Positions 23,749-29,903 of a DNA stretch of 64,000 bases are shown piece by piece. A model generated the notes under the pieces. That model ran no database searches and was not told where the DNA came from. It saw only the letters and a list, made by a program, of their open reading frames with translations. The position numbers and the translations under genes are program-made. The stretch spans positions 62,001-126,000 of the forward strand of contig MCFH01000029.1 in NCBI GenBank assembly GCA_002104945.1. Reading direction: 5' to 3'. Every line of letters begins with the position of its first letter. Within the stretch, counting starts at the first letter, position 1. The stretch is from Piromyces finnis finn (taxonomy: Eukaryota > Fungi > Neocallimastigomycota).

Positions 23749-26715
<2,967 letters not shown>

Positions 26716-27758
26716 ATCACTTGATTCATTTAATGAATAATATTATTTTTTTTTAATGCAAAAAAAAAAAAAAAAAAAAAAAAACTAGCACCTATAGATA
26801 CCAAAAAGAAATGATATTTCTATATAATAATATTATAGAAATATTCAATCTTAAATATATAAAATTTATATACTATTTTTTATACCTATTACCTATACTT
26901 TTTGAAAATTTATATAAAATTTTCAGAACTATATTTATTTATTTAAGAAATAAAAAAAATAGAATTATTATTATCGACACTTTTATATACCTACACTATT
27001 AAAAAATAATAGTATTATATAATGAACTATAAAGGATACAAATATAACTTTGTTAATTAATATTTATAATAATAATAAAAAAAGAAAAATCTAAACAAAT
27101 TAATATATAATATATAAAAAGAATACCATTCCCTAAACTACAAAAAATAAAGAAATTTGATTTAATTTTTGAAAATTTTTAGATGGCCATATCCTACCAA
27201 ATAATAGTTTAATGAAAAAGAGAAATTATTTCCATATATTTTTTTTACTAAAAACATGATTATTGTTTTAAATATAAAGAGTATAATAAAATAAAAAAAA
27301 AAAAAAAATTAAATTTCAATTGAAAAAAAAATTTATAATAACAATTTAACATTCTTAAATATATAGTATAATGAAATAAAAAGAAAAAAAATTAAATTTC
27401 AATTGAAAAAAACATTTATTTATAATAACATTTTAACATTCTTTTAAAGTATAATTTTTAATTTTTTTTATTAATTTTTTTAAGTTAAAATTTTTTCTTT
27501 TAAAGAAATGAATATATAAAATTAAAATGGTTTAATATAATTTTTTTTATGTGTCAAAAAATTATTATTATTTATTATATTAATAAAATAAAAAAAATAA
27601 TTAAAATGATTTTGATATACGCGATTTTTCTTTACAAAATAGTAATTATGATATTATTTTTTTTCTTTACATTAAGATATATAATTATTTTTTTTTGTTG
27701 TTATTTATTGTTGTTGAATAAAAAAAAATATTTAATTCCTGATGATAAATTTGTACAT

Positions 27759-29903
27759 TTACCATAACCAGAATCTTGATTTCTTTTGTTTTTCAGCTGG
27801 GTGGTTTGGTGGAACGTAAACCCAAACTTCATCTTCAATAGATCTTAAGGAGAAGTTTCTTCTTCTGATACTACGCATAATCTTTTTGTGTTCTTCATCC
27901 CACCAAATATTTTTGTTACTGTTAGCACTACCATAGTATTTATTCTTCATTGGGTTAGTGTATTTCTTTGAATAGGCAGAGGAATTGATTTCTTCATCAT
28001 TTTCTTCACCACACTTCTTGAATTTCTTGATACTACATAAAAGTTTGGCGTATTGATCATCATTTGTGAGTCTTTGATGAACTTGTTGAACAATGTAAAC
28101 CTTTTCACGAGATTGGTTACATACATCATTTGCAGTTTTATTTAATAATTCTAAGGAAATATCTTTTTCATTGGAAACACGAGTACCACCAATAGCTTTT
28201 GGAATATCTTCTAAGGCAACCTTACGTAATGGACGATGATTTTTGATTTCTAAAACAAGTTGTTCTGGGAATGAAAGCTTAAGTGGAGCTTCCTTCTTGG
28301 TAATAGGTACAGTTTTTCTAAGGGTAATATCACGATTCTTAATTTCCCAAATAATTTGTTGAATTGGACTAAGAGATTTTGGCATTTCTTTTTCGATTTT
28401 CTTGCATTCCTTCTTAGTTTCCTTAATATTCTTAAGAATATTGGAATTTTGTAATTCCCAGGCCATATAACCACGAGAATTAAGATTGGAACGAACAGCT
28501 GGTTCTTGAGTCTTCTTTAAGATAATTTTATGGTTTTTAATTTCATAAAGTAACATATCCTTTAAGGTGGATGGAGTCTTCTTGTTGTCCTTAATAGAAG
28601 ATGGAACCTTGTTAAGCTTGTTATTAAAGTTTTTAATTTCATACATTAATAAACAGTGATTGTTCATTTTAGTTGGAGCACATAACATACTGTTGGTTTT
28701 CTTGCTTTTTTCCATCTTCTTGTTCTTGCTCATTAATTCATTCATAACCTTTTCGTGAGCATTGATGATTTCATCTGGATATTCATTAGTTTTTTCAACC
28801 ATCATTGGAACAAATGTGAAATCATCATCATCTTCTATCTTGAAATTAATTTTTTTGGTGGTCTTCTTTTCAAAGTCCATCAATGGTCTTGGTGGTGGAA
28901 CTGGAATACTCTTCTTTTCAAAGTCCATCAATGGTCTTGGTGGTGGAACTGGAATACTCTTCTTTTCAAAGTCCATCAATGGTCTTGGTGGTGGAACTGG
29001 AATACTCTTCTTTTCAAAGTCCATTAATGGTCTTGGTGGTGGAACTGGAATGCTCTTTTTTTCAAAGTCCATCAATGGTCTTGGTGGTGGAACTGGAATA
29101 CTCTTCTTTTCAAAGTCCATCAATGGTCTTGGTGGTGGAACTGGAATACTCTTCTTTTCAAAGTCCATCAATGGTCTTGGTGGTGGAATTGGGATATTCT
29201 TCTTTTCAAAGTCCATCAATGGTCTTGGAGGTGGAATTGGGATATTCTTCTTTTCAAAGTCCATCAATGGTCTTGGTGGTGGAATTGGGATATTCTTCTT
29301 TTCAAAGTCCATCAATGGTCTTGGAGGTGGAATTGGGATATTCTTCTTTTCAAAGTCCATTAATGGTCTTGGAGGTGGAATTGGGATATTCTTCTTTTCA
29401 AAGTCCATTAATGGTCTTGGTGGTGGAATTGGAATATTTTTCTTTTCAAAGTCCATTAATGGTCTTGGTGGTGGAATTGGAATAGTACTTTTTGGCTTTC
29501 TAATTCTTAAACGAATTATTGGTTCAAGAATTTTAAGAATTGGTGGTCTTGGTGGTGCAATTGGAATACTCTATTATTTGTTGAATTTTTTAACATTTTT
29601 ATTTATTTAATTATTTTTTTTTTTATTGAGGTGTCAATTTTAAAATAATTTAACATTTATATATACAATAATATAAATTAAGTCCATATGATAAATATTA
29701 AAGTTATTTATTTTATATGATATTATGATGAAATTTACCTTTACAATTTTTTTAATAATACTCTCATTTGGAATAGTAATGATTTCATATTCTTCTTCAA
29801 CATTTAAAGTGTTGACCTTATAATCTTCAAAATCATATTTATTTCTTAATTCACAGATTAAAGTACTGTGAATGTTTTCAGTATTATATTGTTCCATTTT
29901 CAT
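27759..29903 (-). CDS. Proline-rich tandem-repeat protein with five WH2-like motifs (about 658 aa, 2 exons); putative actin regulator
   Basis: Exon 1 is 29903-29739 (55 codons, phase-0 donor GTAAAT). Exon 2 is 29570-27759 (acceptor TAG), in frame with ORF 27759..29456. It contains 12 x MDFEKK(N/S)IP(I/V)PPPRPL, then motifs of the form L..EIKN....L(K/R)K(V/T). Confidence 0.8.
28863..29483 (-). repeat. Coding minisatellite, 48-bp unit (16 aa), 12 full copies plus partial flanks
   Basis: Successive ATGGACTTTGAAAAG starts run from 29456 to 28880 = 576 nt = 12 x 48. Six N/I-type units are followed by six S/V-type units. Confidence 0.97.

Follow-up and report, generated by a model that had tools for sequence, protein, structure and literature searches.

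Gene structure and expression

The 64,000-nucleotide (nt) stretch of Piromyces finnis DNA analysed here (contig MCFH01000029.1, positions 62,001 to 126,000; called the window below) carries on its minus strand, at window positions 27759-29903, a two-exon gene for a protein of about 656 residues. In this protein an array of proline-rich repeats precedes a series of short motifs that resemble the actin-binding WH2 domain and that may, as we tentatively propose, bind actin monomers. The deposited product of the gene is ORX47815.1 (P0001 in what follows), which is annotated as 'hypothetical protein BCR36DRAFT_584527' and matches the window at 100% over the non-repeat part of the protein. The window is extremely AT-rich (12-31% G+C), and the sole G+C peak near the locus is the gene itself. 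Lys makes up 16% and Asn 9.5% of the residues of the protein.

The locus is a real gene, the features of which are listed in Table 1. The initiating ATG, exon 1, the intron, exon 2 and the TAA codon are all in phase, and a second ATG (29897), two codons downstream of the first, is the start in the NCBI model and in the orthologues. The N-terminus encoded by exon 1 is joined to the proline region in P0001 and in the orthologues P0003 and P0005 to P0008. The orthologue contig L001, which is either a transcript or an intron-less gene, is contiguous across the exon junction. Because the NCBI protein and L001 both read across the junction, we conclude that the two exons encode one protein. Four sequencing runs of one organism, drawn from three studies and guessed to be RNA, contain 98-100% of the words sampled from the 3′ part of the gene, and 13 gut or rumen metatranscriptome runs contain 6-15% of them. 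The latter matches presumably represent conserved parts of relatives.

Table 1. Features of the gene and its 3′ flank, in window coordinates.
Feature	Position	Strand	Basis or remark
Exon 1	29739..29903	-	55 codons counted from the first ATG (29903)
Motif 0, N-terminal half-motif LICELRNK..., helix part without LKKT-like tail	29814..29861	-	in exon 1
Intron, GT...AG, phase 0	29571..29738	-	sequence; spliced out in the NCBI protein
Exon 2	27759..29570	-	open frame of 603 codons, then TAA stop at 27759-27761
SIPIAPPRPP (degenerate proline motif), basic hydrophobic stretch ILKILEPIIRLRIRKPK and leading half repeat STIPIPPPRPL	29457..29570	-	conserved in P0006 and P0008
Twelve exact 16-residue repeats, MDFEKK(N/S)IP(I/V)PPPRPL	28881..29456	-	open reading frame, sequence and Tandem Repeats Finder
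Trailing partial repeat (MDFEKKTTKK) and conserved acidic-aromatic patch K.I.F...DDDDFTFVPMM	28800..28880	-	sequence and orthologue alignment
Motif 1, LLMYEIKNFNNKLNKV, tail LNKV	28605..28652	-	alignment and pattern
Motif 2, LLYEIKNHKIILKKT, tail LKKT, the best WH2-like copy	28509..28553	-	alignment and profile
Motif 3, MAWELQNSNILKNI, degenerate tail (CKNV in most orthologues)	28425..28466	-	alignment and pattern
Motif 4, IIWEIKNRDITLRKTV, tail LRKT	28308..28355	-	alignment and pattern
Motif 5, LVLEIKNHRPLRKVA, tail LRKV, four-residue linker	28215..28259	-	invariant in all orthologues; common to P0013
Conserved helical spacer, IPKAIGG ... two long predicted helices ... KCGEEN	27909..28214	-	shared with P0013; AlphaFold helices at pLDDT of about 60-68
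IWWDEEHKK and basic amphipathic helix IMRSIRRRNFSLRSI, putative seventh, degenerate motif copy	27837..27908	-	relaxed-pattern match; aligns to LMYEIRRTNLELQQV of P0013; helix in AlphaFold
Aromatic tail EDEVWVYVPP...KKSRFWLW-COOH	27762..27836	-	sequence and orthologue alignment
3′ flank alignable with L001	27606..27740	-	includes TGTAAAGAAAAATCGCGTATATCAAA at about 27611-27636

Proline repeat array

A first-pass annotation of the locus, made from the sequence alone, had described 12 exact repeats followed by five WH2-like motifs, and the repeats are indeed present as described. Six copies of MDFEKKNIPIPPPRPL (N/I type) are followed by six copies of MDFEKKSIPVPPPRPL (S/V type), all of them exact at the protein level. 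Tandem Repeats Finder reported a 48-nt unit in 13.0 copies with 97% matches (28862-29484); the copies differ by 0-7 bases at the DNA level, and five of the S/V-type copies are identical. The array is an internal duplication and not a product of chance. Its copy number ranges from 2 to 13 across the recovered orthologue sequences.

The window contains 12 full repeats versus nine in ORX47815.1, the deposited protein having three N/I-type units fewer. We considered whether the 144-nt difference might be a mis-called intron, and ruled this out: no 144-nt deletion with GT-AG ends yields the NCBI protein. Because such boundaries are absent, the discrepancy in repeat number is an assembly or allele difference (or a collapse in one assembly) and not the result of splicing.

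Each of the 12 repeats fits both the class II SH3-ligand pattern PxxPxR, which had been pointed out earlier, and the class I pattern KxxPxxP; in the whole window protein there are 14 matches to the former and 13 to the latter. These are pattern matches, and SH3 binding is predicted from them. Both patterns are kept in every orthologue that retains the repeat region, that is, in all except the truncated P0010.

The junctions between units also create a second short motif. LMDFE occurs 13 times, once per unit junction (the last being formed by the final unit with the trailing partial copy), and it fits the clathrin-box consensus L-Phi-x-Phi-[DE] (PMC5182127), a match that we spotted post hoc. 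Among the orthologues the L, M, F and E are fixed, and only the x of LMxFE varies (D, P, S or E). LMxFE may be a clathrin-binding site; having been noticed after the fact, we treat it as a lead and not as a result.

Helical motifs, C-terminal module and predicted structure

The five spaced motifs that the first-pass annotation had quoted lie at 28215-28652 and vary little or not at all across 11 orthologues. The distances from motif to motif, from 1 to 5, are 32, 29, 37 and 32 residues. Their common form is two hydrophobic residues, then Y/W/L/C, E, I/L, K/Q/R and N, followed after 3-4 residues by L(K/R/N)K(T/V). Glu and Asn are the only residues that are invariant across all motif copies. An N-terminal half-motif, motif 0, is encoded by exon 1, and every orthologue that possesses an N-terminus keeps its sequence LICEL(R/K)N. 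The C-terminus is Trp-rich, again as had been noted before for EDEVWVY and RFWLW; a further aromatic element is IWWDEE.

The number of motifs in the array varies between species. The Joint Genome Institute (JGI) orthologue P0004 carries, at residues of about 169-286, an internal duplication of 60 residues that takes in motifs 2 and 3 and results in seven central motifs in place of five.

Within the C-terminal basic helix, the sequence RRRNFS/T (residues 624-629, about 27849-27866) does not vary among the orthologues. As a match to the RxRxxS/T pattern of basophilic-kinase sites, it may be a regulatory phosphosite. The spacer has another RxRxxS sequence, RERITS, which is conserved in 11 of the 12 proteins; the window copy, HQRLTN, does not fit the pattern.

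AlphaFold modelling gave a predicted local distance difference test score (pLDDT) of 38 for the 369-residue non-repeat part and of 53 for the C-terminal module. In these models a short helix is placed on each motif and two longer helices lie in the spacer. The helices of motifs 2, 4 and 5 terminate exactly at the invariant Asn, at low confidence (pLDDT <70). A Foldseek search against the PDB gave no fold match, with nothing at an E-value below 8; axonemal microtubule inner proteins among the Foldseek matches were dismissed as meaningless (E about 9). The protein is best described, from these predictions, as disordered with short binding helices.

Relatives and family history

A word-indexed protein search recovered 11 orthologues with 75-91% identity, one from Neocallimastix californiae and the others from JGI environmental assemblies. 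An exhaustive hidden Markov model (HMM) search of 1.84 billion protein representatives returned only Neocallimastigomycota orthologues and one further protein, P0013, of 190 residues (E=3.9e-4 in the HMM search; profile-profile probability 95.5%). P0013 aside, neither search found a homologue in any named or distant family, whether of actin regulators or of non-cytoskeletal proteins. The gene is thus confined to anaerobic gut fungi and defines a new, lineage-restricted protein family; at the least, its product is an orphan disordered protein.

P0013 consists of one copy of motif 5 (QLIQELENHKPLRKLA...IPQRIGG), the helical spacer, LMYEIRRTNLELQQV and an acidic WW tail. Because it has motif 5, the spacer, the basic helix and the WW tail, the ancient core of the family would seem to be the C-terminal module with two motifs. 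The Neocallimastigomycota appear to have enlarged the motif array and gained the proline repeats.

P0013 is itself an orphan in our searches, and the ESM Atlas held nothing usable for P0013 or P0012. It is carried on gene-dense metagenome contigs of 37% G+C. On these contigs (L002, of 8929 nt, L003 and L004), 11 genes are packed into 8.9 kb with intergenic distances of 24-140 nt and apparently without introns, and the neighbouring genes look fungal (GPP34, HscB, MINDY, SNF2 and prenyltransferase). The best named matches of the SNF2 neighbour, at 44-60% identity, are in early-diverging fungi (Mortierellomycota, Glomeromycota and Kickxellomycotina), and for this reason the host of P0013 is probably an uncultured fungus with a compact genome.

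Comparison of the motifs with WH2 domains

The WH2 domain has been described as a helix with two large hydrophobic residues, two small, polar or acidic residues, and I or L before K, R or Q; the linker that comes next has 4-5 residues (more in some families), a hydrophobic one among them, and leads to L-[KR]-[KR]-[VTA] (PMC3298513). Apart from position 3, the motifs of the window protein follow this layout: positions 1, 2 and 5 are hydrophobic, position 4 is Glu and position 6 is K, Q or R. The linker of 4-5 residues, including a hydrophobic one, leads to L-[KR]-[KR]-[TV] in motifs 2, 4 and 5. The helix pattern is seen in all six motifs (0 to 5); the tail is full in motifs 2, 4 and 5, degenerate in motifs 1 and 3, and absent from motif 0. 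We infer that the invariant Asn is a helix cap, in the role played by the conserved Gly of the canonical WH2 domain. With a relaxed WH2 pattern, five or six sites were found in 10 of the 12 proteins, the C-terminal basic helix among them. The spacing is also comparable, in that the two WH2 domains of N-WASP are 27 residues apart versus 29-37 for the motifs described here.

Several results weigh against a WH2 identity, and we gather them here. The strict pattern derived from the published description (PMC3298513) has zero matches in the 12 proteins, because position 3 of the motif is never small or acidic, being always Tyr, Trp, Leu or Cys; when position 3 is left free, only motif 2 matches, in nine of the 12. 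The first-pass annotation had proposed searching each motif with the Pfam WH2 profile (PF02205), the gathering cutoff of which is 23.1 bits, and no motif rises above it. Motif 2 alone reached 13.7 bits (E=0.053), the best of the set, with WH2 as the sole family reported, and the C-terminal 369 residues reached 11.5 bits (E=0.26), with WH2 as one of just two families reported. Among the orthologues, WH2 was reported in two of 12, beside spurious Phage_pRha, RsbU_N and GLTP matches at similar E-values. Nothing exceeded the cutoff when Pfam was run on the entire protein, its non-repeat part, exon 1, each motif singly, all 12 orthologues and P0013. Searches of PDB sequences with the motif profile, motif 2 and motif 5 retrieved no WH2 chain, and one with a further profile retrieved no relevant chain. 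The conserved face of the helix, with its aromatic, Glu and Asn residues, is not explained by a simple WH2 contact, and strings resembling LKK come cheaply in the K/N/I-rich composition of an AT-rich genome. The five motifs do not count as independent evidence, since they are paralogues, and the family has no detectable homology to any actin regulator.

For a finer comparison we built a WH2 HMM from seven peptides solved in complex with actin (taken from PDB alignments) and scored the motifs against 20,000 composition-matched random 32-mers. Motif 1 (p=0.016) and motif 2 (p=0.009, or 0.0006 with two beta-thymosins added to the model) scored better than this null. The values for motif 3 (p=0.34), motif 4 (p=0.17) and motif 5 (p=0.14) resemble noise and also count against the WH2 identity. 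As a calibration, the true WH2 domains of VopL, INF2 and Spire scored only 6-13 bits against WASP or WIP, and the unrelated Hsc70 scored equally. Since true WH2 domains score just as low across families, the weak profile scores neither refute nor establish the WH2 reading. What survives of the WH2 assignment, then, is the layout, the tandem spacing and the two of five motifs that beat the random null; the strict pattern, the Pfam cutoff and the PDB searches do not bear it out. The first-pass annotation had also named outcomes that would refute its proposal: the lack of a WH2 profile or structural match combined with a lack of G-actin binding, or clear orthology to a non-cytoskeletal family. 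Of the first, one half, the lack of a match at a curated threshold, is what we found; orthology of the second kind was not seen.

One alternative is that the protein is a lineage-specific disordered scaffold in which the helical motif binds a partner other than actin, such as an EF-hand protein, tubulin, a component of the zoospore flagellum or a nuclear partner, and that the likeness to WH2 arises from K/N/I-rich composition combined with an amphipathic helix. The Glu and Asn residues, which alone are invariant, are not hallmarks of WH2; the conserved aromatic residue at position 3 would lie, on a helical wheel, on the face opposite the WH2 contact face. The noise-level profile signal of three of the five motifs, the Lys and Asn content given above and the lack of any relative among actin regulators are also consistent with such a scaffold. 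However, the distance from the helix to L(K/R)K(T/V) is fixed and this tail is conserved across genera in motifs 2, 4 and 5 despite their differing linkers, the order of proline-rich region and motifs and the spacing of about 32 residues match those of actin regulators, and we did not recognise a motif for an alternative partner. We regard a non-actin partner as a real possibility, if a somewhat doubtful one. Motifs of other kinds were also compared with the sequence. Sfi1/centrin repeats, RPEL, the CPI motif, the PIP box and LIR were dropped as pattern mismatches, SxIP as fitting only the leading half copy of the repeat, and the calmodulin 1-8-14 pattern as fitting only motif 4.

Proposed function

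The best explanation that we can offer is that the protein, which would be cytosolic and is largely disordered, acts as a multivalent adaptor in the machinery of cortical actin or of endocytosis. The more specific proposal that we favour, tentatively and with less than even confidence, is that it forms a scaffold with many SH3-docking sites, in which the WH2-like motifs bind actin monomers and filament assembly is promoted wherever the scaffold is clustered. The 13-14 units of K-x-I-P-(I/V)-P-P-P-R-P-L would dock SH3-domain proteins, which would cluster the protein, or be clustered by it, at a membrane site, and the conserved LMxFE between the proline units may add clathrin binding. Each of the five central motifs would bind one actin monomer in the manner of WH2, by way of the amphipathic helix, the Asn cap, the linker of 4-5 residues and L(K/R)K(T/V), and the N- and C-terminal motif variants may contribute to this binding. 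With a spacing of 29-37 residues, the bound monomers would be concentrated and aligned, so that filaments could be seeded, or barbed ends fed, where the SH3 partners gather. The C-terminal module (motif 5, a helical hairpin, the basic helix and the aromatic tail) probably serves in targeting or self-association.

In this proposal the closest functional precedent among fungi would be, by analogy, Las17. The Las17 proline tracts with flanking Arg residues are SH3 ligands and also bind actin, weakly (PMC5026357), and the proline tracts of the window protein are similar. The proline repeats lie upstream of the helical motifs, which is the order found in WASP-family proteins. The family, including fungal Las17 and the WH1-less WAWH type (PMC3298513), likewise combines a proline-rich region, WH2-like motifs, a basic amphipathic helix and an aromatic/acidic C-terminus. 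The window protein differs from it in having no WH1, GBD or other N-terminal domain, in the unmatched C-domain pattern, in its basic tail, in the roughly 100 residues that separate the last WH2-like motif from the connector-like helix, and in having three contiguous prolines per tract and not five. Pfam found no family in exon 1 or the first 95-100 residues, where WH1, SHD, WAHD and GBD were looked for. The first-pass annotation had not recognised the protein as Las17/WASP or as verprolin; in our analysis Pfam detected no WH1, and no homology to either was detected.

These comparisons bear on a second alternative, namely that we are dealing with a nucleation-promoting factor of Arp2/3 in which the V...C...A arrangement is stretched: motif 5 would serve as V, the basic helix IMRSIRRRNFSL would take the place of the connector, and the acidic-Trp element would be either EDEVW or the terminal Trp. 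The C domain is described as three large hydrophobic residues at three-residue spacing, then two or three R/K residues in a row and a hydrophobic residue to close (PMC3298513). P0013 matches this published pattern exactly, with I-xxx-L-xxx-I-RR, and ends in EEEEDAPLTWW...; the window protein retains two of the three spaced hydrophobic residues, an RRR triplet and the closing hydrophobic residue, and it has the acidic-Trp elements WWDEE and EDEVW, the latter 20 residues before its C-terminal Trp. On the other hand, the pattern is unmatched at the C-terminal helix of any Neocallimastigomycota orthologue, and the distance between the supposed V and C elements and the absence of WH1, SHD and WAHD in the Pfam scans, both noted above, argue against such a factor. 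The final 15 residues are net basic (KQKKSR) and not acidic, and the basic helix is as good a match to the repeated motif of the family itself as to a connector. We think that an Arp2/3 activator of this kind is very unlikely.

A third alternative is autonomous nucleation: as a tandem-WH2 protein of the Spire, Cobl or VopL/F type, it would assemble a seed of 4-5 actin subunits without Arp2/3. Like Spire, Cordon-bleu, VopL/VopF and JMY, the window protein has tandem motifs of the helix-linker-LKKT/V type, about 30 residues apart, in a disordered region, and in these factors too a proline-rich segment often adjoins. The five WH2-like motifs at 29-37-residue intervals suit a nucleator, the proline-rich arm could recruit profilin-actin or SH3 partners, and the duplication of motifs 2 and 3 in P0004 suggests a modular, dosage-like array. 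However, tandem WH2 arrays by themselves are poor nucleators, and the known nucleators need dimerisation or another accessory domain. Of the accessory domains of known members (KIND, FYVE, the Cobl K-region, VCD or the VopL dimerisation domain) Pfam found none in the window protein, nor any other known domain, and the exhaustive HMM search found no homology to Spire, Cobl or VopL/F. The window motifs differ from those of the tandem-WH2 factors in their aromatic residue at position 3 and in the Asn cap that takes the place of Gly, in addition to falling short of the Pfam WH2 cutoff, and the tails of motifs 1 and 3 are degenerate. Everything that speaks against the WH2 identity counts here as well, and we consider an autonomous nucleator unlikely.

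Going further, one could envision a tandem-WH2 actin assembly family that belongs to the gut fungi and would be the first of its kind in Fungi. A two-motif, P0013-like ancestor would have undergone motif duplication and fusion to a 13-valent SH3/clathrin-box repeat, and clustering by SH3 proteins and clathrin at endocytic sites would then lead to Arp2/3-independent seeding. SPIRE has been reported to be absent in fungi (PMC11231147), and in the literature library searched we found no paper that ties WH2 to anaerobic gut fungi. We judge this scenario to be distinctly unlikely.

Two further systems resemble the scaffold that we favour. Verprolin/WIP proteins have an N-terminal actin-monomer motif, a long proline-rich region of SH3 ligands, more actin-binding motifs and an aromatic tail, and are disordered throughout, as is predicted here. 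Unlike verprolin/WIP, to which it has no detectable homology, the window protein has an N-terminal motif without the LKKT half. Its tail is reminiscent of what we take to be the WH1-binding tail of WIP. AP180/CALM-type clathrin adaptors also carry many short motifs of the clathrin-binding type in a disordered region, comparable to the 13 LMxFE pattern matches, but the window protein differs from them in having no ANTH or ENTH domain and in having a clathrin box rather than DLL or DLF.

Should the motifs bind actin, then a little-studied group of fungi, one that still produces motile zoospores, would possess an actin assembly factor specific to its lineage. The protein would illustrate how a tandem actin-binding array can grow as a short motif is copied, with a two-motif protein at one end and a seven-motif protein at the other, and, with 13 near-identical sites, it would offer an unusually clean natural case of very high SH3-ligand valency for the study of actin assembly driven by clustering. 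Should the motifs not bind actin, the protein would be another orphan disordered protein, and a caution that proteomes rich in Lys, Asn and Ile readily produce WH2-like strings.

Flanking sequences

A local BLAST of window positions 24000-27758, in which AT-rich noise was dominant, found no synteny with the gene downstream on L001. About 300 nt downstream of the gene, at 27273-27455, lies an AT-rich tandem repeat with a unit of 83 nt, present in about two copies with 83-88% matches and indels. Directly past the stop codon, in surroundings that are AT-rich and featureless, the 3′ flank aligns at 74-79% to positions 2277-2380 of L001, and TGTAAAGAAAAATCGCGTATATCAAA is a GC-containing block within this conserved stretch. 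The conserved flank may be part of a 3′ untranslated region or a polyadenylation element.

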